Source: Trichosphaerium sp. ATCC 40318 (Eukaryota > Protista > Tubulinea). Taken from it: a stretch of 64,000 bases of DNA. The position numbers and the translations under genes are program-made. The DNA is taken from assembly GCA_038496445.1 (NCBI GenBank), contig JALMLS010000142.1:1-64000 (forward strand), read 5' to 3'. Shown here one piece after another: positions 2,503 through 58,719 of this stretch. Positions within the stretch are counted from its first letter, which is position 1; the number at the start of each line of letters is the position of its first letter. The notes beneath the pieces are model-generated. The model had not been told where the DNA came from and ran no database searches. It saw only the letters and a program-made list of their open reading frames with translations.

Positions 2503-3421
2503 ATGCAAGCGTACAGTAACCCTACAGTGTATTTATCAAGAAGAGAGACTTTTAGCTCCTGGTAATACTTTAAAACGTTCAAATACGCATAAAATATGTT
2601 CTACACGCGTTTTGTAGATAATCACCTAACTATCGTAACGTCCCAAACTCAAATCTCTATAGCCACCGCCTACACAACCCAGCGCTCACTATAGAGGAAA
2701 ACAAGGAGATATACGGTAAATGTAATAACCCAAACGGACATGGTCACAATTACGTCGTTTACGTGACCCTACGCGGTAAAGTACGCTTTACTGGTGTTTA
2801 TAAACTGATAAAATCGCAGGTTGACAAACGTACAGGGATGCTAATGAACTTGACAGACCTAAAAGCATGTCTAATGAAAGTAATCGATAAACTAGATCAC
2901 AAGGTATGCTCTCCCTGCATTTTTATCGTTTGTAATTGCAAAACGCTCTGGGTGTTTTTTTGGTAATGACGTCAGCCAAGAAGATCCTTTTCTAGCTTCT
3001 TACGATTCTCAACTATACGATAGAACCTTGATAAAGACGTACCAGAACTTTCCGGTGTTATAACGTCAACTGAAAATGTTTGCGTGTACTTTTGGCATCA
3101 ACTCATTCAAGTTTTACCGAACCCTTCAATACTTTACGAGGTACCTTTGAATTTAATATTACAAACCAGTACAACTTCGTACTACATAATTCCTTTTCGG
3201 CAAACACGTCGGTTTTTTTTTTTGCAAGCTGACTTCAGAATTCCACTTGTCATTATGAACTTATTTATAACTGTAGCCATTCGCCTTATTAAAATAAACT
3301 TGATAGTTTTTTCTTTCTTTCTTTTTAATGTAAACCTGTTTTGTTACTGACAACGTCACCATTGTAGGTTCGTATTGGAGAGACAGAGAAGAATAGTGCT
3401 TTCTATAGAGGAGAAAGTTGA
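2503..3421 (+). CDS. PTS: 6-pyruvoyl tetrahydropterin synthase
   Basis: Spliced translation MQAYSNPTVYLSRRETFSSCHRLHNPAL...YGKCNNPNGHGHNY...GMLMNLTDLK...LDHKNLDKDV...STENV...VRIGETEKNSAFYRGES* carries the Cys/His PTPS motif CxxxxxHGHNY. Confidence 0.95.
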
Positions 3422-3622: not shown

Positions 3623-5096
3623 ATGAGCACTCACTGTTACAAACTCGTTCTCGTCGGTCTTGGTGGTGTAGGTATGTTATTGGACTCAACTACACTTTGT
3701 AGTTTTATCACGCTATGCGTTTCTCTCCTAAATTAAATATACAGGTAAATCATGCCTTACAATACAGTTCATTTCAAACAAGTAAGTGGTTCGTTTTGTA
3801 GATCTGCAAATTAACCCCTTTCAAGGTTTATTGATGACTACGACCCAACATTGGAGGATTCGTACAGGTAAATTCTTTTATTTTGATACTGGTGGATTCT
3901 AGATCCTCAAACCTCCACAAAAATACGTCGGTCTGCTACAAAATACAGACGTTCGCATTTCACGGTGATATTGGCCTTTAAAACCTACTTCGCTGATATC
4001 ACCCACAAAACATAACTTTTATCTTATCTCGAGCTCACGAGCGCAAAATCGCTTTACCACACCAAGGACGGTTTTTCAAGGTACTAAATTAGTATGTAGG
4101 AAACAAGTAACCATCGACGCGGAGGAATGCATCCTTGGTACGTGACAACTTCATTGGCTTGTTTATCTCCTTTTGTTTTACCAAACACAATTTTTTCGTA
4201 CATTGCGTCATACCAGAACTCATAGCTCTCAAACGCTCACAACTGACTAGATATCTTTGATACCGCCGGACAAGAAGATTTCGTAGCCATCCGTGATCAG
4301 TACATGAAAATTGGACATGGTTTCCTCTGTGTCTACTCTATTACTATGCGTTCTTCATTTGAAGAGGTAGTAAACCTTCACGGTACGTATAAACGCTCAT
4401 ACCTTTTGTTTTTGTTTCGTTGTCGAGAAACAAATCCTTCAAACCGTTTAAAGTCGTATTCGCTTTACCATTACAATGGGTTTACGACAGTACAGAGCGT
4501 AATATTTTTTATGCGCTCAATTCGCCAAAATAGTGTTTTCGGTTTTTCTTTTTCGTTTTTTTGCTTATTTGGCGTTCTTTTAGACCATATGTTACGTGTT
4601 AAGGATGCTGATAAAGTACCATTTGTTCTTGTTGGTAATAAATGCGATTTGGAAGGAGAACGTGAAGTAACGACAAAGGAAGGTCAAGAACTCGCTGATA
4701 AGCTCAGTGTAAAATTCATTGAGACTTCTGCTAAGACTAGACATAATGTAAAAGAGGTACGTGTTGTAACTGGCTTCTCTTCTTTTTTTGGAGACTTTGA
4801 CGACCAAATCCTTGTTATTTTCTGTATTTGCAATTCTTTTGGTTCAAAAAGTGCAATCTTTGACTCTTTTTTAGGCTTTCTTCATGTTAGTACGTGAGAT
4901 TGGTATTAAGGTTGAACCTGCAAGCAATGACGATAAAGCTGACCCTAAATTACACAAGAAAAAGAGGTATGAATCTTGTATCTTAAAATCCCGACAACTC
5001 CGAGCATCGGACTTTTATTATTACATTATCCTTGTTTTAACGTTTATGAGCTAATTGTTTTTTTTCTTCTTTAGACGTGCTTGCAATCTCTTGTAA
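3623..5096 (+). CDS. rasS: Ras GTPase, most like Dictyostelium RasS
   Basis: KLVLVGLGGVGKSCLTIQF, YDPTLEDSYR, DTAGQEDF, NKCD and ETSAK motifs, with a polybasic tail and CaaX (CNLL*). The PTLEDS effector loop and CNLL tail match my recollection of RasS. Confidence 0.85.
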
Positions 5097-9780: not shown

Positions 9781-10359
9781 TTTATGAAATTCCAAACAAA
9801 TTACCTTGAAATACTTTACAATATTTACATCAAGTCTTGTAGCACAAAATTTGTTTTATTTACCAATGATAATTTAGTTACAAAATGCAAATGTTCCACA
9901 CGCTATTGTGTACAGGTCAAACTCATCAAATCTTTTCAATCTTTGGCCAAGAATTTTATTGCACCTGGTATCGCAATCATAAATTGCTAATAACGCATTC
10001 GTAGAAGCTAAAATAAGAAAAAAGTAGTTTTTTGATAAATTAAATGGAAATAACCTTCAAAAACAATGTACTTGAGATTAATGCCCTAAATGCGTGTCCT
10101 AGTGGTGTGTAAAGGCCTTTGAAATGCTTTACAAGCCTCAAAACGGATTAGTAAGCGATATAGAAATATCACTGCTAACGAAAATCACCAAAATACTTAT
10201 CTTGCTTACTTTTTGATTAAACGTCTTTTCGTTGTATCCATTGGTTTTCTACACCAATAAAAGGGTGACGATGTGGTTTACTAAAAAAAAACTTAGTTAG
10301 GTAAGGCTTTGATAGTTGTTGAAATAATGAATAATTTTGAATTTTCACCAAAAATATTT

Positions 10360-10525
10360 TTCAAAGGAATTCTCACAAAATCCATATGGAATTTTGTTAA
10401 AAATCCCAAGGGAATTTTCTACAAAATCCATACGGAATTCCATTAAAAATCCCAAGGGAATTTTCTACAAAATCCCAAGGGAATTTTCTACAAAATCCAT
10501 ATGGAATTCTGTTAAAAATCCCTTC
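10360..10525. repeat. Subterminal ~22-23-bp tandem repeats (AAAATCCCAAGGGAATTTTCTAC-like)
   Basis: About six copies are visible directly, related to the left-end repeats. Confidence 0.85.
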
Positions 10526-13055
10526 AATTATTCCTGTTGATATGCTGCCAACATTTGCCAATATTGTTGTTTGGGATTTTTTTACAAATCCCAAGAAATT
10601 CCTTATTTTAATGGAATATAGCAGAAATCCCATCAAAAATCCAATCGAAAATTCAGATTGCTTAGGGATTTTTTCCACAATTCCGTTAAAATCCTTAAAA
10701 AACACGGAATTTAACAGGATTCCAGAGGAAAATCCCATTTTTAATTTACTACTGATGGTAGTTAAGTTGTCCATTTTCATACCATCCTTTACCTTCGCCA
10801 TGTTGCTTACCATCAGCCCACATGTTCTGGTATTTAAGTTGTCCATTTTCATACCATCCTTTACCTTCGCCATGTTGCTTACCATCAGCCCACATGTGCT
10901 TCATCCTCAACTCAAAAGCTGTGGTCTGAAATCTGTCCATTTTCATACCATCCTTTCCTTTCACCATGTTGCTTACCATCAGTCCACATGCACTGATACT
11001 TTAGTTGTCCATTCTCATTGTCATACCATCCTTTACTTTCACCATGTGCTTTACCATCAACCCACATGCATTGCCTCTCTTGTTGTCCATTTTTATACCA
11101 TGTCTTAGTTTCACCATGTTGTTTACCATTGGCCCACATGTTATGGTACTTAAGTTGTCCATTTTCATGCCATCCCTTACTTTCGCCATGTTGTTTGCCC
11201 TCAACCCAAAAACTATGGTCTGAAATCTGTCCATTTTTATACCATCCCTTACTATCACCGTGTTGTTTATCATCAAACCACATGCATTGCTCCTCAAGTT
11301 GTCCATTCTCATGCCAATATTTGCTTTCGCCATGCTGCTTACCATCAACCCACGCGCATTGCCTCTCTAGTTGACCATTTTTATACCATCCTAAACAAAG
11401 TCCAGTTTTTTTACCATCAATTATTGTATACTGTCTCTCAAGTTGTCCGCTCTCATACCATTGTTTATACACTCCACTTGCAATGTAATTATGAAGCTGT
11501 ACCTTTCCACTTTTGTACCATTGTATCCATACTCCTTTTTTTTGTAGTGTTTCATCAAAATGTGTATTAATCGCAGCTCTCTTTGATAGTGTATGGAATT
11601 TTGTGAATGTTTCTGCATTGAACGTACAAATGTAAGTTTGGAGTTCACATGGGATATCCAGTAAACTCAAGGAGCCTGGTTTACAGTGTATTTTTTTATG
11701 CTTTGCAGTTGACTGTAACAAAATCTGATATCAGCAAAAACACAGGGAGAACAAAATTTGACATTCAATTTTACAGGCAAAAATTGTTGTTAACTTTTTT
11801 CAACAAAGACAAATAATCCCTTTTTCAAAAATTACGTAAGTATGTTTGTATTTGCGTAAGACACAATATGTGAGGCTACAAGGAAAATAAGCGCAGAAGC
11901 TGTACAGCGAGCATACACAAAATTTGAGCCTGTGGTAAAAAAAAGTAAGGCTTTTGCCAAATTCTGAGCTGCATGTGGCCCAAAATAATTTTATAAGCTT
12001 GCACGGTGGATAGGAAACGAAGCGGATTTTGTTCTAAAAAAGAGCCAAAACGGTTAAAGAAATGCGAGTAAAGCAAAGCAAAAGCTTCAAAAACAATTTC
12101 TCTTTACAAAAAAACGAAATACACTCTGTTAGTTTTAATATAGCTGTAGCTGTACGTACCATACACAATTAATACTACCAATCGTATTAAATAACCGGTT
12201 TGCCACAGTGTAGGACGTTCGCGAGTTCGGAATTTCGAAGAAGAGTCATGTAATTAAGCCAACTTGCTTATTGTCAATATTTGATAATTTTCTTTGCAGC
12301 TTCTGACAAGACTCTCAGAGTGGCAACGCTAAAGCACTGGCTTTAAGCAAGCTCCACTTTACATGGACTGTCAAACTTTGTGGTTTGCATGATGCCTCGT
12401 ACCCAACAAAACAGGACGGTTGTAGGTTGATACCTCTACCAAGACGCGAGAAACCACTCATCGCATACTGATGTGCAAAGATTGGTAAACCAAACAGTCC
12501 AAATCACAAGTCCCCAGAAACCTTATTGTACAACGGCCAAATACCGTTGAGATATTGACAATACGAATACCATTTCTATACTAACGTATTGTTCACGCCT
12601 ATGAATAATTGGTAGAGACTGTGCAATCTAACCAATAATCAACTAGGCCATTGTTCCCTTCAAGCAATTATCTCACGCAAGCGTACTAAGAACATGTTGA
12701 AATAACTAGCAGCACTCTAACCAATTTCTTGAAAACAGACAGATATTAAAAAAGCTCTGAGTGATAACGTCCTGTACGTTTCTTTATTATACACACTAAC
12801 TAACACAACTCTACAACAGCTAGTAGAGGTAGTGACCCGCGACAAGTACCCTTTTGACCTGTTAGTACTGGTGATGATTTAATTGACGGAAGACAACAAT
12901 ATAGATTGTGTTGCTCACCCTTAACAAGTGTTAATTTCATACAGAGTGTTCATAAAACCGGATAAACTTTGTGAACATTACATGAGTAAGCATTCACAAC
13001 ATCGGATGTACAAGTTGTGAATTATTTGAGTGTTGTTACCCTATACTCAAACGCA

Positions 13056-19061: not shown

Positions 19062-19904
19062 TCAACATATGATACACCCTTTCTCTCGTTTACCATTGAC
19101 ATAAGTAGATTGAGACTTCAATGTGCCATCAATGTTCCATGTCTTTTGCTCTCCATGAAGCTCGCCTTTTACATAGTGGGCAACAGCCTTTAGTTGCCCA
19201 TTTTTAAACCACCTCATTGCCTCTCCTTCAAGTTTACCATTAACATAGTTACATTGCTTACGCAGTTGACCATTTGGAAGCCAAGATTTTGCTTCACCCT
19301 CCATGTTACCTCTGACATAGTAACACTGATCACTTAACTTTCCGTTATCATGCCACATTTTGTATTCTCCTTCGAGTTTATCATTAACATAGTTTCTAAG
19401 CTCGTACTGCTTTCCAAACTCATCCCAACACTTGTACTCTCCTTCTAGTTTACTATTGGCATAGTAACATTGATAACGTAATTGACCATTGAAGAACCAT
19501 TGATTTTGTTCCCCTTCAACAAAATCTTGAACATAATTACACTTCATTTGAAGTGTACCATTATCATGCCATTTCTTGTACTCTCCTTCAAGCTTACCTT
19601 TAACATAACAACCCTCTACTTTCAATGGACCAAAATCATACCATTTCTTAAACTCTCCTTCGAGTACACCATGATTCCAATGGTATTGTTGTAGTACTTG
19701 TACATTCGACTCATCAACTTTATTCCTTTTTATCCATTTGCCTTGTTTTTTGAAATCACAGTCAAACCTTGAACTCACAGCTGTTTGTTTTGATAACAGA
19801 GGCCATTGAACGTATAATTTAATATCCAAATCGACAATATCGAGTAGTAGCTCAGTAGGAAGACCCAATAAATGGCAAAGATTCGATTTTGTACCAGTAT
19901 TCAT
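19062..19904 (-). CDS. F-box-like + MORN-variant repeat protein (intronless)
   Basis: LLGLPTELLLDIV N-terminus and about eight 24-aa YVxGKLEGEYKxWxxNGxL repeats. Confidence 0.88.
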   Translation of the reverse strand: MNTGTKSNLCHLLGLPTELLLDIVDLDIKLYVQWPLLSKQTAVSSRFDCDFKKQGKWIKRNKVDESNVQVLQQYHWNHGVLEGEFKKWYDFGPLKVEGCYVKGKLEGEYKKWHDNGTLQMKCNYVQDFVEGEQNQWFFNGQLRYQCYYANSKLEGEYKCWDEFGKQYELRNYVNDKLEGEYKMWHDNGKLSDQCYYVRGNMEGEAKSWLPNGQLRKQCNYVNGKLEGEAMRWFKNGQLKAVAHYVKGELHGEQKTWNIDGTLKSQSTYVNGKREKGCIIC

Positions 19905-20155: not shown

Positions 20156-21093
20156 ATGAACTCAACTACAGCATTCTTTGATGAGATTCCAGTAGAATAA
20201 TAATTATTATTCTACAATTCGTTTCCACGTTATCTATGCATTCCGTTGTATGTACGTGTACGTTATTATCAAATGTAGCAACACAGCACCTGGGATTTGA
20301 ACTGAAACCGGCTAATACTGTGGTTAATACAAAGAAAGAACTAAAACAACTGTACAAACAATCATCCCCACATATCAGAAAGACAACTAAAATAATTCTT
20401 AAGTTCCCTATTAAACAAAAGCATTTGAAGTACCTACAAGGAGTGTATGCACTCAAAATTCGTAGAATGGAACAGCCAGACTGTATGGACTTTACAGATT
20501 TTAAAGTGATTGACAGTATCAACTTTACTTATTGTCACTTTGTAACTGATGAGCATCTTCACCAACTATCTAAGGTTACAGATGAAGGTGTCAAAGATTT
20601 AGCTGGTGTACATACAATTAGAATTAATCTAGCATGGTGCAACGTTACAGATAAAGGTGTTAGAGCATTGGCTGGTGTTCACAACATTTGCTTGAATGGT
20701 AATACAGATAATGGTATTAAAGCATTGGTTGGTGTTTATGAAATTCATTTGGGTAGTTGTAGCAAAGTTACTGATAAGAGTATTAAAATGTTAGTTGCGT
20801 TCACACCATCAATTTAAGGAATACAAAAGTGTCAGATGCAAGCATTAGCTGGTATTCATTCAATTACTGTATCAGGGTGTAAAGTTACAGATAATGGTAT
20901 TAAGGCATTGGTTGGTGTTAATAGGATCAATGTATTAAAATGTAGTGTGACAGATGATGGAGTTAATGCATTAGATGGCGTTAGAGAACTTAATGTTTCT
21001 CATTGTCAGAATGTTACAATTACTAGTATTGATGGGTGTTATGTTTTAACCAATGAAGCAATGCCTTTGGTTTATTTTAATGAGGACCTATAA
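20156..21093 (+). pseudogene. Truncated, frameshifted copy of the F-box/LRR gene at 30345-32369
   Basis: The 5' ~410 nt are nearly identical to the reverse complement of 31955-32369 but carry a 1-nt deletion (GTAGAATAA, creating a stop). There is a large internal LRR deletion, a second frameshift near 20797 and a divergent 3' tail. Confidence 0.8.
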
Positions 21094-30344: not shown

Positions 30345-32369
30345 CTACAAGACACCACAGAACCTTACAACGTCCAAATAGGTCTCAGAACAAACATAGC
30401 GCTGATTAATATTATTTTTAATTGTAACATTCTCACAACCGGTAACATTAATAAATCCTACCCCCTCTAATGCCTTAACACCATCATCTGTGACACAGGT
30501 TTTACATACATCAATTGTTTTAACGCCAACCAATGCCTTAATACCCTCATCTGTAACTTTGCACCCTGATAAATCAATTGTATGAACACCAGCCAATGCC
30601 TTAATACTTGCATCTGACACTTCTGTATTCCTTAAATTAATGGTGTGAACGCCAACTAACATTTTAATACTCTTATCAGTAACCTTGCTACAACTGCCCA
30701 AATGAATTTCATGAACACCAACCAATGCTTTAATACCATTATCTGTAACATGTGTATTACCATTCAAACAAATGTTGTGAACACCAGCCAATGCTCTAAC
30801 ACCTTTATCTGTAACTTGGCACGCCACCAGACTAATTTTATGTACACCAGCTAAAGCTTTGACACCTTCATCTGTAACATTGGTCCCTGATAAATAAATT
30901 GTATGAACGCCAGCCAAATGTTTAACACCCTTATCAGTAACTTTGCTACAATTTCTTAAACTGATTTTATGAACGCCAGCCAATGCCATAACACCTTCAT
31001 CTGTAACAAGTTTATTCTGTGATAAATCAATAGTATGAACACCTGCCAGTGCTTTAATACCATCATCTGAAATCCGATTAGCATCACATAATAGAATTGT
31101 ATGAACACCTGCCAATGATTTAATGCCTTTATCTGAAACACTTGTGCGCCCTAAATTAATAGTATGAACTCCAGCCAAAGCCTTAACACCTTTGTCTGTA
31201 ACTTTTGATTTCCAAAGGTTGATAGTATGTACTCCAGAAAATGCTTTAATGCAGTCATCCCCAACACGACATCCTTTGAAGTCTATTTCATGAGCACCTG
31301 CCAACGCTTTAATGCCGTCAGCTGTAATACCTTCACACTTTGAAACATGAATTGTATGAACCCCAGCTAGTGCTTTAATGCTTCTATCTGAAAAATTGTA
31401 ACAATTCATTAACATAACAGTGTGAACGCCAGCCAGTGCTTTAATACCCTTGTTGGTAACTTGAGAATAAGAAAGGTTAATTGAATGAACACCACCTTTT
31501 GCGAGAGCTTTAATGCAATTATCTTTAAGTTTACAACATTGTAGCTGTATAGTATGAACACCTGCCAATGCTTTAATTCCATCACTTGTCACAGAACAAC
31601 GAGTTAAATTAATGTTGTGAACACCAATTAAGCAGTTAAGTCCTTCATCTGTGATATTGGTACAATTGCTTAAATTAATTGTATGAACGCCAGCTAATGA
31701 TTGAAGTGCTTCATCTGTGATATTGGTACAATTGCTTAAATTAATTGTATGAACGCCAGCTAATGATTGAAGTGCATCATCTGTGACACGTGTACAATCG
31801 CTTAAATCAATTTCATGAACGCCTGCCAACGCTTTAATACCTTTATCTGTAATACGCGTACAATAACTTAAGCCAATTGTATGAATACCAGCCAATGATT
31901 TGATACCATCATCCGTTACTTTTGTACCGTCTAAAATAATTTTGTGAATTCCAGAAAGTTGGTGAAGATGCTCATCAGTTACAAAGTGACAATAACTAAA
32001 GTCGATACTGTCAATCACTTTAAAGTCTGTAAAGTCCATACAGTCTGGCTGTTCCATTCTACGAATTTTGAGTGCATACACTCCTTGTAGGTACTTCAAA
32101 TGCTTTTGTTTAATAGGGAACTTAAGAATTATTTTAGTTGTCTTTCTGATATGTGGGGATGATTGTTTGTACAGTTGTTTTAGTTCTTTCTTTGTATTAA
32201 CCACAGTATTAGCCGGTTTCAGTTCAAATCCCAGGTGCTGTGTTGCTACATTTGATAATAACGTACATGTACATACAACGGAATGCATAGATAACGTAGA
32301 AACGAACTGTAGAATAATAATTATTATTTCTACCGGAATCTCATCAAAGAATGCTGTAGTTGAGTTCAT
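30345..32369 (-). CDS. F-box + leucine-rich repeat protein (~24 LRRs of 21-22 aa), intronless
   Basis: FFDEIPVEIIIIILQFV F-box, and the repeat consensus LAGVHxIxLxxCxxVTDxGIKA in a 674-aa ORF. Confidence 0.92.
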   Translation of the reverse strand: MNSTTAFFDEIPVEIIIIILQFVSTLSMHSVVCTCTLLSNVATQHLGFELKPANTVVNTKKELKQLYKQSSPHIRKTTKIILKFPIKQKHLKYLQGVYALKIRRMEQPDCMDFTDFKVIDSIDFSYCHFVTDEHLHQLSGIHKIILDGTKVTDDGIKSLAGIHTIGLSYCTRITDKGIKALAGVHEIDLSDCTRVTDDALQSLAGVHTINLSNCTNITDEALQSLAGVHTINLSNCTNITDEGLNCLIGVHNINLTRCSVTSDGIKALAGVHTIQLQCCKLKDNCIKALAKGGVHSINLSYSQVTNKGIKALAGVHTVMLMNCYNFSDRSIKALAGVHTIHVSKCEGITADGIKALAGAHEIDFKGCRVGDDCIKAFSGVHTINLWKSKVTDKGVKALAGVHTINLGRTSVSDKGIKSLAGVHTILLCDANRISDDGIKALAGVHTIDLSQNKLVTDEGVMALAGVHKISLRNCSKVTDKGVKHLAGVHTIYLSGTNVTDEGVKALAGVHKISLVACQVTDKGVRALAGVHNICLNGNTHVTDNGIKALVGVHEIHLGSCSKVTDKSIKMLVGVHTINLRNTEVSDASIKALAGVHTIDLSGCKVTDEGIKALVGVKTIDVCKTCVTDDGVKALEGVGFINVTGCENVTIKNNINQRYVCSETYLDVVRFCGVL

Positions 32370-50132: not shown

Positions 50133-51872
50133 TTAATTCTCGTTGGTTACAACTTTGTTGTATGGTATTTTATGAGCACAAACACCGTTTTTCTTCTGGT
50201 TGGAACAAGAACATCCATCAGGACATACAGCAGGATCAACGTTTTCAACATCCTCCCATCCTACGCAATGATAACAAGTAAGGACATAGTCAGGATCATA
50301 TTTTTTCTTGACAGATAGTAGTTGGTTGTAGGCTTCGATTGAGCCATAGTAACTTATTTGCCAATCCTCATCAGATACAAAGTTATGTTGTGGTTCATTC
50401 CAATATACAAAGTTGTTTATGCCTGTTGGTTTCAATACAGTGTCTGCCCATTTATCAGCCTTTTCTATTAAGTCAGGACGAGGTTTTCCTTTATCGACAT
50501 CCCATCCTACATAACACGTGATAGCGATTGACGCTTTTCTTAAAGCTAGATTTACTGCTGTTTCTTTACCAAGAGGATCAAGCGTACCGCTATAACCTCC
50601 AACAACAGAATTACAGTAGCAACCAATTAAAGCGCCAGGCCATTCTGTATCTGAATAGTCGTTTAACCATTTCGAAATCTTCTCCATCTGACCATCTGTT
50701 TTTAAGTCGACAGCTGTTGACATCATATACATACTAACAGCTCCTCCGACATCGCTATAGTTATTAGCCTTCATAAAGTCGGAGTATGAGTCATGTGTTT
50801 GCTGAACTTTGCATGTAAGAAAGGCACAACCAGGTATTTTCGACAGCGGCTCCAATGCAGTTGTACACTCTTTTGGATCACCTATACAATACGCATCTAT
50901 GGTCACAACAGGAGCACCTGTTTCAGGGTCTATAACAGCGATGAAATAAGCACCAGCATTGTTCGGAGCATCACGCATCCAATCTTGATAAGTGTTCGCA
51001 ATTTCGTCAGTAATGAGGAATCCTCCGTTGAACTCTGTTACAACTCCAGGATCTTCAAATACCTTGAACGTAAGGGAAGTGACGATTCCGAACGGATTTC
51101 CCGAACTCCCTCTCAGCGCTCTGAATAGCTCTGGATGGCTATCAGCTGAAGCGGTTATTGGTGTGCCATCAGCGAGGATTAAATCGATGGATACAATCAA
51201 ATCCGCTCCTAAGCCAACCATTCGTGTCAAACGTCCATGACCACCGCCAAGAGCCCATCCAGCAGGTCCAACAGTTGGATCAGCACCGGTTGAAGCTACT
51301 AAGGTATTGCCACTTTCTTCACCAAGCCAGTTTTGTATTTCGCCCCATGTTTGTCCTAACAATTATTAGCAATTGACAAACAATCGGTCCATTGCTAGCG
51401 TACCTGGTCCAACTTTTATTTGTTTTGCTTCCTCGAATAACTCCTTGTCGTTATATTTCTTCATGAATATAAGAATAGCATCGTCAACAGAGCTTCTAAG
51501 GGTAATGTAAGAACGTTATTTCCTTAAATAATATAGATTATACCTAACATCTTGATGATGTCCTGTGCTCTTTACAGCAATTCTGATATTGTGCTTAACA
51601 GCAAATGCCAAAGTGCTTATAATATCGTCATCGTTCTCGGGTATAACAACAAGAAGAGGTTGTGGAGGACCAGTGCGAAGATTATACGTAAAAATAGAAT
51701 GTTTGTAAAGATCATCTCCTTTTTCGAATACTTCACCTTTGATGGTTGACTTGAACAACTCCACGTCAGTCGTGGTCGGCCATAGATCATCGCCGGGTAG
51801 AGAAAACTCTTTGGCATCTATGATATACAGCGCAAAGAGTATTATTACTGAGATTAAAAGCTGTTGATGCAT
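50133..51872 (-). CDS. Secreted FAD-linked oxidoreductase, berberine-bridge-enzyme-like
   Basis: Signal peptide, VKSTGHH (covalent-FAD His motif), VGPAGWALGGGHG, ELFRALRG, FGIVTS, and a BBE tail YWNE..YYG..YNQLLSVKKKYDP. Confidence 0.92.
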
Positions 51873-55373: not shown

Positions 55374-58300
55374 ATGAACTCTGCAGTTTGTGGTCTCGCA
55401 TTCTTCCTTATCGTTCTCGTAACTCGCTCGAACTGCGCTTCAAACGCTAGTCCAAGTACTGTTTTCTTATGTAACGCGACCTCAACAAAATGGGGATGTG
55501 CACTGGAAGACTGGACTCTAAAACGACAAAAATTAGATGACGACACATTCATTATGGTTCCAAACCGATTGAAATGTACAACAGTACCAGAACAATATAT
55601 GAGTTGGGCGACAAAAACTGTTCGTACTGACAGATACCTTCTCTTTGCTGGCGAAGAATCATCCCCACAACAAGAGTATATACCTGGGAGTATTGTACAA
55701 GTATCATTAATCGCGACAAAGTACTCGGCAAAGTACAGAGGTCTACTGTTGTGCGTACATTGACAACTTTAGTCCGGAGATCATTGTTTTTTTTTTTTGA
55801 TTGTTACAGAAAAAATCACTTTCTTGATGTGTCTTCGTATTAACTTACTAACAATATTCGTTTTAGATACGCAGAAGATGATAATAATAACCATGTCGGA
55901 GAGTGGAAGCTATCTACAACTGAATCTCCTCGTAAGAACACCTTTTTTGGAAAACGCTTTTGCGTTTTGCCGGTTTTCTTGGATATTTTCCGTCAATGTC
56001 ATCCTTTTAACATGTTTCTTGTAGCATTGTTCCAATTACCTTGGGGAAATGGATCGTTTTGCAGACAATCTGTAATGCACTCAACAGCAGAATTGAAGCC
56101 TTTAAAATATACCTTTACTTTTATCGCTCCTCCAATGGGTACTGGAAAGATCACTTTCAGAGCTCTTGTAAAGAGCGGTGATGCAAATACTGGCGACTTT
56201 TGGTGGCCTAACTTGGAAGGAGATGTCACCTTGACAGAATCGTCGGAATCCCTTCCAAACACAGGATGGTTCCAAACTCAAGTACGCTTTTTTCCTCTCA
56301 TGTTGTTTTCGTAAGTTGTCACATACTTATTCTCTACCAAGCTTGGACAATCATGCGCTGATAGATGTGAGGCTGAGAGCCTCAAATGTGATACTGTTTC
56401 AATGGAAGTATCAACAGCATCAGTAAAGTTGAATCTGAATTATCGCCAGCAGGCTTTATTTGCGAAAAACCAATCTTGAGCGGTTGTAGCTCTATTGGTG
56501 CTTCTCAAAGTGCTGATGGATTTTGCTACTTTGACGACACAAAATGCGAATCTCAAGGTCGTACAGATGAAGCTGTTTCATGTGAGGCTAAAACCACAGA
56601 TGAAGAAGACGGGTATGCTCCTTTTTTTCAGGAAACTGTTTTTCTCAAACTAACTCTTTCACTGTAGTCTTCGCTTCTGTAAATGTATTGAAGTCACTCA
56701 AGCACCTGTAGAGCCAGAAAACACCACAGTTCCAACAAATGCTCCTCCAACAACTGATGCGCCTACTGTTGCTCCTACTGTTACTGCTATTGAAGTACTT
56801 GCTCCTTCAAACGAAACCTCCTTTTTGTCACCATCATCGCGACCAACGGTTTCAGTATTGTTCCTCTGTTTGTGCACACTTGGCTTGGCTTTCTTCAAAG
56901 GAGGTCGTTCATCAACACCCATGCTACTTGTAGTTGTACTAGTTGCTCTTATTGCTATGCCATCCGTACAAGGACATAACTGGATGTTCAGTCTTAGTAG
57001 ACGTCCATACGCAAGTACAGAAACACCTTGTCCTCCGGTAAATCAAGAATATCCTCATGTTCAAGTTGGACCGAATCAAGAGTTCGAGATGGAGTGGGCT
57101 CAAGGCCACAGCAGTACATCTTACTTTATTATCATGCACCAGAAGTACGAGGACAAGTTGAAGCTAAACAACCAAGCTCTATTTGCAAAGTACTTTAATG
57201 ACGCACCTGCCGGAGCTGTAAAGACACTTGAAGTCCTTCACAGACGTTTCGCTTATCGTGAACCTAATGCAGTAAAAGACGCTCCACTTGGTGACGAGAT
57301 CTTAAGCACAGATGGAGACTTTATTCCTAGACCAGAAGCTTTTGGTGGTTGGGGTGTTAACGCAACGTTATTCAAATACAAGGAAAACCTTCACGAGAAT
57401 AACTACGCTGAATATGAACATCCAGATATGCCTTGGGTTGAAGCCATCTTTAAAGCAGAACATCTCACAGGACAACCTAGAGATGCTGATATGGCTAAAT
57501 TTACTATACCTGGCCGAGCTGGTACAGGTAGATACATCGTTCATTGGCTATGGAGAGGTTACAGGGATTGTATTGATGTTGATTACGTTGAAGAAAATGT
57601 TGAAGAGATCTATGGTGTTGCAGACGAATCAGAATCTTACGCGTACGATAGCATACGTTTTAGTGCCTTTTTTTTTTGACTAGTTTTGGTCGTTTTCGTG
57701 ACCTCATTTTATGTAAATCTACTGGTTTAGACTTGAATCACGTGATCGTAGTGTTCGAAAACTTATTTTATTTTAGACGCGTAGATCATTGTTATTTCCC
57801 AGAATACCGTTCGGCAGGAGGTAAGCGTATATGATTAATACAAACGAATCTTTGTTGACACCTTTTTGTAGATTGCAGTCGCTTAGTCTCTAACGATTTG
57901 GCCTACTGCCAAAGAAGGTGTACAACCAACTGTGCTGGTGTGGCTGTTATGCCTTTATCAGTAGCAAATTTCTACAGCGAAGAAGCTGGTCTTGTTGACC
58001 CTTCGTGCATGAACCTATTCAATATGACAATAGAAACTGAAGCACCAGAGGATATTAATGTTTGCTTTTATGTTAGAGCTAGACTGCCTTCTGATACTTT
58101 TGGTGTCAACGAAATTGTATATCCAGATGACCCAGCATATCAAGCAACTTGCTTCATGAAAACCCCAGGGCGTATATTCCCTGGGTACGTACCACCAACG
58201 ACAAAACACATTCCATGGAAACACGGAGACAAATGCATTGATTGTGACACTGTTAAATTGAATAGTGTTTTATCAGTAATCCCAAAATGGCCTCTTTCTG

Positions 58301-58719
58301 ACGATTGTGTTAATTGTGACCGCGAGCCGAGCACAATTGAACTACCCAAGGTACCTACACTTACAAATGAAAGGGTAAACTCTACCTGTAATGGAGCAAA
58401 CGGCCTCTGGAGAAATGTCAATGGATCAAAATATCATACTTGTAATGGTACAAACGCAGAAGTTGGTGAACTATGTCACAAGCAACTTTCTATCAACGGA
58501 CGTTCGCTAAATGTCCAATTCTTCCCTTCAGAGTGCGCAGCAGCTGCAGCTAGGGATCCTGAATGTGCAGGCCATGTATCAATATACGGAGGTAGTCTAT
58601 ATGTTGGCTCTAAACGAAGTGGAAAATGCTACTGCCAAACAAAGGTAGAGTGTTGTAATGGGTGTCATCGCATATCTAGAAATGAACGTTGGACATTATT
58701 CGATGTTGAATACTTGTAA
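55374..58719 (+). CDS. Modular secreted polyprotein: Reeler domain, Cys-rich, Pro/Thr stalk, anchor, internal signal peptide, His-brace LPMO-like domain, Cys-rich tail
   Basis: Reeler motifs YRGLLL-YAED..VGEW, CRQSVMHS and FTFIAPPMGTGKITFRALV. One continuous exon reads ..VSVLFLCLCTLGLAFFKGGRSSTPMLLVVVLVALIAMPSVQG-HNWM..PC..EWAQGH..GRYIVHWLWRGYRDCIDV. There is an apparent 1-nt frameshift near 56406. Confidence 0.7.

Follow-up and report, generated by a model that had tools for sequence, protein, structure and literature searches.

The window, by which we mean the whole 64,000-nucleotide stretch of contig JALMLS010000142.1 from Trichosphaerium sp. ATCC 40318 that was analysed here, carries on its forward strand a gene of seven exons running from an ATG at 55374 to a TAA at 58717-58719. 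The gene joins in one reading direction a Reeler-type upstream half and a second half that opens with the residues His-Asn-Trp (the HNW domain) directly behind a predicted internal signal peptide. All introns of the gene are of the GT..AG type and 51-134 nucleotides long, the splice phases fit, and these short introns together with a GC content of 37% mark the DNA of the window as eukaryotic. The whole gene is collinear with homologues of about 900-1100 amino acids. Neither a second copy of the gene nor any match in an Rfam scan was found within the window. The exons and the features that they encode are as follows, with H1 and H2 denoting the two hydrophobic segments, A2 and A3 alignments of homologues, and L001 a homologous genomic contig.

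55374-55750, forward strand: exon 1, with an N-terminal signal peptide (about 55374-55439) and then the start of the Reeler-type upstream half; donor GTGCGT at 55751
55867-55931, forward strand: exon 2, Reeler-type domain (YAEDDNNNHVGEWKL...), matching the conserved YRGLLLYAV..KVGEW block of alignment A2
56025-56281, forward strand: exon 3, remainder of the Reeler-type domain (..VMHS..GTGKITFRALVKSGDANTGDFWWPN..)
56342-56612, forward strand: exon 4, Cys-rich module related to the C-terminal domain of GnT-V/MGAT5; holds a frame break
56668-57642, forward strand: exon 5, a single stop-free frame; acceptor CACTGTAG before 56668
56668-56848, forward strand: start of exon 5, with the LRFCKC end of the Cys-rich module, a Pro/Thr stalk, and the small residues SPSS (56828-56839)
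56849-56896, forward strand: H1, hydrophobic tail of 16 residues, VSVLFLCLCTLGLAFF; a segment resembling a glycosylphosphatidylinositol (GPI) signal or a stop-transfer segment
56897-56920, forward strand: basic loop KGGRSSTP, net charge +2, predicted to lie on the cytosolic side
56921-56974, forward strand: H2, internal signal peptide of 18 residues, MLLVVVLVALIAMPSVQG, ending VQG, with Val at -3 and Gly at -1
56975-57642, forward strand: HNW domain of about 222 residues, opening HNWM, with His1 (codon 56975-56977), His45, and Tyr196
57777-57820, forward strand: exon 6, linker into the C-terminal region (RVDHCYFPEYRSAGG), with a RIDHC.F motif conserved in alignment A3 and in L001
57872-58719, forward strand: exon 7, conserved Cys-rich C-terminal region without a hydrophobic tail; TAA at 58717-58719

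The junction of the two halves lies within exon 5. A preliminary description of this locus had read one exon from 56668 through the stalk, the hydrophobic tail, KGGRSSTP, and a signal peptide into HNWM, and this reading holds, coordinates included, with the frame open to 57642. At the level of sequence the locus shows the layout of a signal-peptidase polyprotein, in that a segment of stop-transfer type and a short loop precede an internal signal sequence with a -3/-1 site, and at VQG|HNW the His is the first residue behind the predicted signal-peptidase site. The HNW domain of the same exon contains both the GRYIVHWLWRGYRDCIDV strand and His45. Towards the other end of the gene, the product of exon 1 is collinear with the N-termini of the homologues P0001, P0004, and P0008 (tblastn), and the RFC.C motif that is encoded at the start of exon 5 is kept in homologues of the upstream half.

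The 222-residue HNW domain served as query in an exhaustive HMMER search for homologues, and the counts given for these are of cluster representatives at E<=1e-3. The family so defined comprises 396 representatives; a word-indexed search confined to proteins of 178-567 amino acids gave no match, most relatives being longer. The match begins at the first residue of the query, His1, in 124 representatives, and 120 of these 124 begin HNW, so that the His on whose conservation the preliminary description had made its interpretation depend is retained across the family. The residue preceding the His is A, G, or S in 121/124 and that at position -3 is A, V, T, S, C, or G in 123/124. The domain is internal in 82 representatives, starting at about residue 90-920, and all of these internal forms (82/82) have residues permitted by signal peptidase at both -1 and -3, with positions -5/-4 rich in P, S, T, and G. 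Two hydrophobic segments are found in the 80 residues upstream of the His in 75 of the 82 internal forms, the medians being a 17-residue segment, a 4-residue loop, and a second 17-residue segment; the net charge of the loop is positive in 53/75, and small residues are enriched directly before H1 (65 homologues). A Met occurs near the start of H2 in only 15/75, and the internal signal peptide therefore does not conceal a second start codon. As a general explanation, a downstream gene of its own beginning at ATG 56921 was considered and rejected, since most homologues have no Met there. The preliminary description had also proposed searching homologues for the order of Reeler domain, anchor, signal peptide, and HNW domain, and this search showed the upstream family to be the same as that of the window in 75/82 internal forms. 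Judged by the -3/-1 pattern, the recurrence of the junction in 82 homologue clusters is more than chance.

In homologues the two halves share single messages. Flabellula baltica (P0004) and Rhizamoeba saxonica (P0012), both of them Amoebozoa of the order Leptomyxida, have the fused open reading frame (ORF) on single Trinity transcripts, and leptomyxid amoebae are the closest named relatives, at <40% identity. Fused ORFs also occur on single assembled transcripts in MMETSP0206 and MMETSP0437, which like the two leptomyxids are from cultured organisms, and on intron-free environmental contigs of about 3 kb, and contig L002 has a complete fused ORF of 976 amino acids with an in-frame stop before the ATG. 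The genomic contig L001 (23 kb, 38.9% GC) has a fused gene at 10001-12898, in which an unbroken ORF of 540 amino acids covers the Reeler half, the cassette of hydrophobic segments and loop (..VNERMAITLLLLLGLSSYASA|HNW..), and most of the HNW domain.

Each half also occurs alone. The stand-alone HNW proteins P0005 and P0017, the former from a cluster that includes a member from the acantharian Phyllostaurus, have the domain right behind an N-terminal signal peptide, and their genes have in-frame stops upstream. Stand-alone Reeler-type proteins (P0206 on L003 and P0201 on L004) have a genuine stop codon immediately past an H1-like tail, an ending that is the classical layout predicted for a GPI-anchored protein. 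Because each half occurs by itself with the same signals, the fused gene looks like an in-frame union of a putative GPI-type protein with a secreted one in which neither has lost its sorting signal, and stand-alone halves of this kind are what would be expected of a splitting polyprotein. In a quick tree of HNW domains the fused and stand-alone forms interleave with at least eight well-supported switches, the true number being uncertain since some of the entries classed as N-terminal are probably 5'-truncated contigs. No C-terminal anchor was found on the HNW proteins among these homologues. Their Cys-rich C-terminal region aligns across fused and stand-alone forms and gave no relatives in Pfam and the PDB. 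The end of the window protein (58717-58719) is also the end point of some homologues (e.g. P0007), while most relatives and L001 extend by a Cys-rich module of about 60 residues ending ..RSC..YGPPC...

The upstream half was correctly recognized as Reeler-like in the preliminary description: the Pfam Reeler model (PF02014) matches 4 of the 10 upstream halves of alignment A2 (best E 1e-9), and a search of the PDB with the A2 profile extends to reeler chains of F-spondin (2ZOU, 2ZOT, and 3COO; E 0.02). The exons of the window, searched singly against Pfam, gave no Reeler match because introns split the domain. The Cys-rich module that follows (exon 4; A2 positions 208-306) matches MGAT5 chains (PDB 6yjr and 5zib) with an E value of about 8e-6. 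A GPI-anchored protein would be expected to have an N-terminal signal peptide and, at its very end, small residues, a short spacer, and a hydrophobic tail of about 15-20 residues; the upstream half has the signal peptide, the SPSS residues, and the 16-residue tail, this tail being internal and not C-terminal. Reeler domains are shared with F-spondin, the N-terminus of reelin, insect Noduler, and FRRS1/SDR2; unlike these proteins, the present gene combines the domain with a Cys-rich module like the GnT-V C-terminus and a GPI-type tail, and fuses all of this in frame to a second secreted protein. As a separate observation, the part of the upstream half encoded at 55374-56281 (A2) has two invariant residues separated by about 90 positions, a Met (..M.WA..) and a His (..VMHAS..), a spacing reminiscent of the Met/His haem ligands in the cytochrome domain of cellobiose dehydrogenase; any hint that this gives of a possible redox partner role for the Reeler-type half is pure speculation.

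Ordinary secretory processing would probably split the Reeler-HNW protein in two. The N-terminal signal peptide would bring the Reeler domain, the GnT-V-like Cys-rich module, and the Pro/Thr stalk into the endoplasmic reticulum, H1 would halt transfer, and the small basic loop would remain cytosolic. H2 would then re-insert as a signal peptide with its N-terminus in the cytosol, and cutting by signal peptidase at VQG|H would release the HNW protein into the lumen for secretion with His at residue 1; without a hydrophobic tail, this downstream product would be soluble. The Reeler product would stay on the hairpin formed by H1, loop, and H2 or, more likely, would be transferred to a GPI anchor at the small residues that precede H1. 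Overall we think it probable that the locus encodes a natural secretory polyprotein that is split in two, with His1 leading the second product. The anchor and re-insertion polyprotein proposed in the preliminary description is thus sustained in part, in that the order of Reeler domain, anchor, loop, signal peptide, and His1 is conserved and homologues have it on single mRNAs, but the frame from 55374 is broken in this copy. That account had the layout right, and it missed the frame break in exon 4, the GnT-V-like Cys-rich module, and the breadth of the arrangement.

The closest parallels to such an arrangement are the viral envelope polyproteins (flavivirus, pestivirus, and hepacivirus prM/E and E1/E2; alphavirus PE2-6K-E1), in which an ectodomain, a stop-transfer segment, and a very short cytosolic loop are likewise followed by a second segment that serves the next protein as signal peptide, with a lumenal cut at small -3/-1 residues. 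Unlike these, the present gene is cellular and would give two products only, its first segment resembles a GPI attachment signal and not a permanent anchor, and the apparent purpose here is a defined N-terminal His1 on the second product. An internal GPI signal has been engineered in the DAF-hGH chimera, which still yielded GPI-anchored DAF with a second secretory protein behind the signal (Caras 1991, PMC2288913). Because that internal signal was processed, the position of H1 is compatible with GPI anchoring, and since stand-alone relatives also use the same tail at their C-terminus, GPI transfer is plausible for the fused protein. The chimera was artificial, whereas the present arrangement is natural and conserved across many protist lineages, and in the present cassette the GPI-type tail is followed by a signal peptide predicted to be cleavable.

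For the HNW domain, the position of the first His is the most telling feature. A His as the first mature residue is a hallmark of histidine-brace proteins (the lytic polysaccharide monooxygenases, or LPMOs, as well as X325/Bim1 and CopC), and we know of no explanation for a His fixed at the signal-peptidase site besides a need for its free amino terminus. The strongest argument for a putative histidine brace is that the His is fixed exactly at this site family-wide. His45 is invariant in 111 aligned HNW domains and His1 and Tyr196 are at least 90% conserved; all three are present in the window protein and fit the layout that had been assigned to them in the preliminary description. Conserved positions of the domain include His1, Asn2, Trp3, Arg9, Pro18, Gly44, His45, Tyr73, Asp142, Tyr147, Gly185, Tyr187, Trp193, Gly195, Tyr196, Asp198, and Asp201. 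The free N-terminal His, the invariant His45, and the conserved Tyr196 would most likely form a copper histidine brace as in LPMOs. We infer cleavage, GPI anchoring, copper binding, and oxidative activity alike from the sequences.

To relate the domain to known structures, we modelled it with AlphaFold2. The model built with the 111-sequence alignment is a confident beta-sandwich (pLDDT 92.6, pTM 0.90), the single-sequence model being unusable (pLDDT 37.5). In a Foldseek search with the confident model, LPMO chains took 5 of the top 50 places, at ranks 12, 15, 17, 28, and 50 (AA11 9exj; AA10 9i1u, 6ndq, and 5ftz). The sole Pfam family matched by more than one HNW member was AA9, and this weakly (3/111, best E 0.0057). 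Because the consensus of the HNW family resembles motifs of the AA10 LPMOs, we compared the two by hhalign, using CBP21-type AA10 genes from bacterial genomes and metagenomes, and three segments of the HNW domain gave these matches.

HNW..P-SR segment (His1) with AA10 HGYVESPASR (His1): hhalign P 0.003, score reached by 0/120 shuffles
F..EW..GH....YF segment (His45) with AA10 FTW.LTA.H....YFIT (second His): P about 0.1, score reached by 25/120 shuffles
G.YIVHW.W..GY.DC.DV segment (Tyr196) with AA10 G.HVILAVW......AFY..IDV (axial Phe): P 0.016, score reached by 1/120 shuffles

The three segments are collinear in both proteins, and their summed score was reached by 0/120 column-shuffled AA10 profiles. 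In both families the mature N-terminus, which in the HNW proteins is a predicted one, has the pattern H-x-aromatic-hydrophobic-x-x-P-(x)-S-R, the second His lies within an F..W....H....YF strand, and the axial aromatic residue falls on a C-terminal strand of the form G.(Y/H)V/I....W......(F/Y)Y..IDV; both are secreted beta-sandwiches, by prediction in the case of the HNW domain, and are often followed by binding modules. They differ in that the HNW domain has about 100 residues inserted later in the sequence, has N2 and W3 where AA10 has G2 and Y3, and is covered by no Pfam model. We also take the domain to resemble the AA15 LPMOs. The X325/Bim1-type fungal proteins have an N-terminal His after the signal peptide, are associated with GPI anchoring, and may handle copper rather than cleave polysaccharides; the X325 copper domain bears the GPI anchor at its own C-terminus. 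In the present gene, unlike in these proteins, it is the upstream partner that has the anchor signal while the HNW protein lacks an anchor, and no sequence or fold match between X325/Bim1-type proteins and the HNW domain was found. Taken together, the evidence for a remote link of the HNW domain to the LPMOs is suggestive and unproven. We offer as a tentative reading that the segment of H1, loop, and H2 is a dedicated splitting cassette, acted upon by GPI transamidase and signal peptidase, which would give equal amounts of a GPI-anchored Reeler/GnT-V-like protein and a soluble copper enzyme that represents a new LPMO family and whose catalytic His1 arises only in this way, and that the two may be surface partners in substrate capture or electron supply and oxidative attack.

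Several results weigh against these interpretations. The Foldseek search of the PDB and BFVD with the model of pLDDT 92.6 returned nothing significant (best E 0.011), and the LPMO chains among its matches had a probability of <=0.69 and a TM-score of <=0.33. The HNW domain of the window had no match in Pfam, and neither phmmer nor the family profile found an LPMO or any relative among PDB sequences. The full-length hhalign comparison with AA10 was weak (P about 0.04), the addition of 80 metagenomic AA10s gave no gain (P still about 0.04), and the His45 segment on its own is not significant against AA10, 25/120 shuffles reaching its score. With no significant Foldseek or Pfam match and an hhalign P of about 0.04, the LPMO-like fold proposed in the preliminary description is not established. 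The action against prey or cyst walls suggested there is conjectural. As to the topology, the loop in the family is often just 1-5 residues long and both hydrophobic segments are short, which leaves a stable hairpin uncertain, and in this copy the upstream half is broken in frame at 56405-56457.

The alternative that fares best accepts the processing and holds that the HNW domain is not a copper enzyme but a secreted beta-sandwich of another kind (for instance a lectin, an adhesin, or a non-redox metal binder) that needs its N-terminal His for something else. It draws on the lack of a significant structural or profile match of the domain to any LPMO family, and on the position of His45, which is much nearer to His1 in sequence than is the case for the second His of AA10, since the HNW domain lacks most of the loop region that separates the two His residues there. 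Against it stand the fixation of the His at the signal-peptidase site in 120/124 clusters, the invariance of the second His, and the conserved Tyr in the G.Y....W..GY.DC.DV strand, which aligns with the strand of the axial Phe in AA10; moreover, the collinear AA10 segment matches exceed all 120 shuffles and LPMO chains fill 5 of the top 50 Foldseek places. On balance we regard this alternative as unlikely, while giving it serious weight.

Two hydrophobic segments separated by a short positive loop also resemble a hairpin anchor, and the protein might therefore be an uncleaved double-pass membrane protein, with H1 and H2 as a permanent hairpin and both halves extracellular on one chain; the His would then not be N-terminal and there would be no histidine brace, with which the failure of Foldseek to confirm an LPMO fold would agree. 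The junction itself argues otherwise. Internal forms are as strict at -3/-1, and at the Pro/Ser/Thr/Gly-rich positions -5/-4, as proteins where H2 is the N-terminal signal peptide, and the HNW start always falls exactly at the predicted cleavage site. In addition, the hydrophobic cores of about 12-15 residues are short for a stable membrane span, and in stand-alone relatives H1 forms the C-terminal tail and H2 the N-terminal signal peptide. We consider the uncleaved form improbable.

The break in exon 4 bears on how this particular copy is expressed. Alignment of homologues by tblastn shows that the homologous coding sequence switches frame between 56405 and 56457, and the original frame runs into a TGA at 56474-56476, so that as assembled the first ATG could give only a truncated Reeler product. 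Enumeration of canonical GT..AG introns in exon 4 found none of the right length to explain the shift. An intron at 56367-56449 would restore the frame and was rejected because it removes Cys residues that are conserved in all homologues. The conserved Cys spacing in the exon is compatible with a simple small indel, and the upstream half, with an X placed at the break, matches the A2 family profile with an E value of 1.6e-97 and keeps all invariant positions but one. On account of this retention, an assembly indel or a very recent mutation appears likelier than an old pseudogene. That this genome instead has two expression units, the Reeler ORF ending early at the break and the HNW protein being made from ATG 56921 by means of an internal transcription start and a signal peptide of its own, would be in line with the break at 56405-56457 and the TGA at 56474, with the Met that this copy does have at the start of H2, and with the stand-alone HNW genes of other organisms, but is more improbable still given the stop-free frame of exon 5 between the halves, the undecayed upstream half (E 1.6e-97, one invariant position lost), the Met at the H2 start in just 15/75 homologues, the homologous transcripts spanning both halves, and the chance that the break is an assembly indel. 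Separate expression of the HNW protein is possible for this copy only, and only if the break is real.

Some neighbouring genes may be recorded here. Berberine-bridge-type enzymes (CAZy AA7) act as partners or H2O2 sources for LPMOs. An ORF for a berberine-bridge-like FAD oxidase (FAD_binding_4 + BBE) lies at 50133-51362 on the reverse strand of the window, about 4 kb upstream of the gene, a proximity that may be coincidence. On L001, about 7 kb from the fused gene, ORF fragments at 2633-3307 on the reverse strand match DOMON and Cu2_monooxygen (PHM/DBH-type copper monooxygenase). A Ras-family fragment lies near the homologue on L001, and the window has a Ras-family ORF at 4304-4897. Large single-exon ORFs of the window with LRR_6 (RNI-like) and MORN_2 repeats, at 30345-32369 (reverse strand), 20236-20817 (forward strand), 19062-19904 (reverse strand), and 10912-11721 (reverse strand), are typical of the genomes of free-living amoeboid or flagellate protists.

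In the literature outside subscription journals we found no paper that treats the HNW family, places an LPMO-like domain after an internal signal peptide, or describes a natural cassette combining a GPI signal with a signal peptide. The underlying machinery is already known, and what is new is its variant arrangement together with a sizeable protein family. The HNW family, a large eukaryotic one of 396 representatives for which we found neither a Pfam model nor a solved structure nor a paper, may be a new class of copper protein or LPMO present in amoebae, Rhizaria, and marine plankton. The cassette would offer an answer to the constraint of the histidine brace, whose His must be residue 1, so that such a domain normally cannot follow another domain. 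The strict pairing with one Reeler-type partner (75/82) points to a functional two-component system. If GPI transfer takes place as proposed, this would be a natural GPI signal acting from inside a polypeptide, and if the reading as a splitting cassette is true, the family would provide a natural internal GPI signal and a cellular polyprotein linked to an LPMO, each the first of its kind, in an arrangement widespread in protists. Should the protein be processed as predicted, cells, and not viruses alone, would use signal peptidase on internal signals to obtain two secretory proteins from one ORF.

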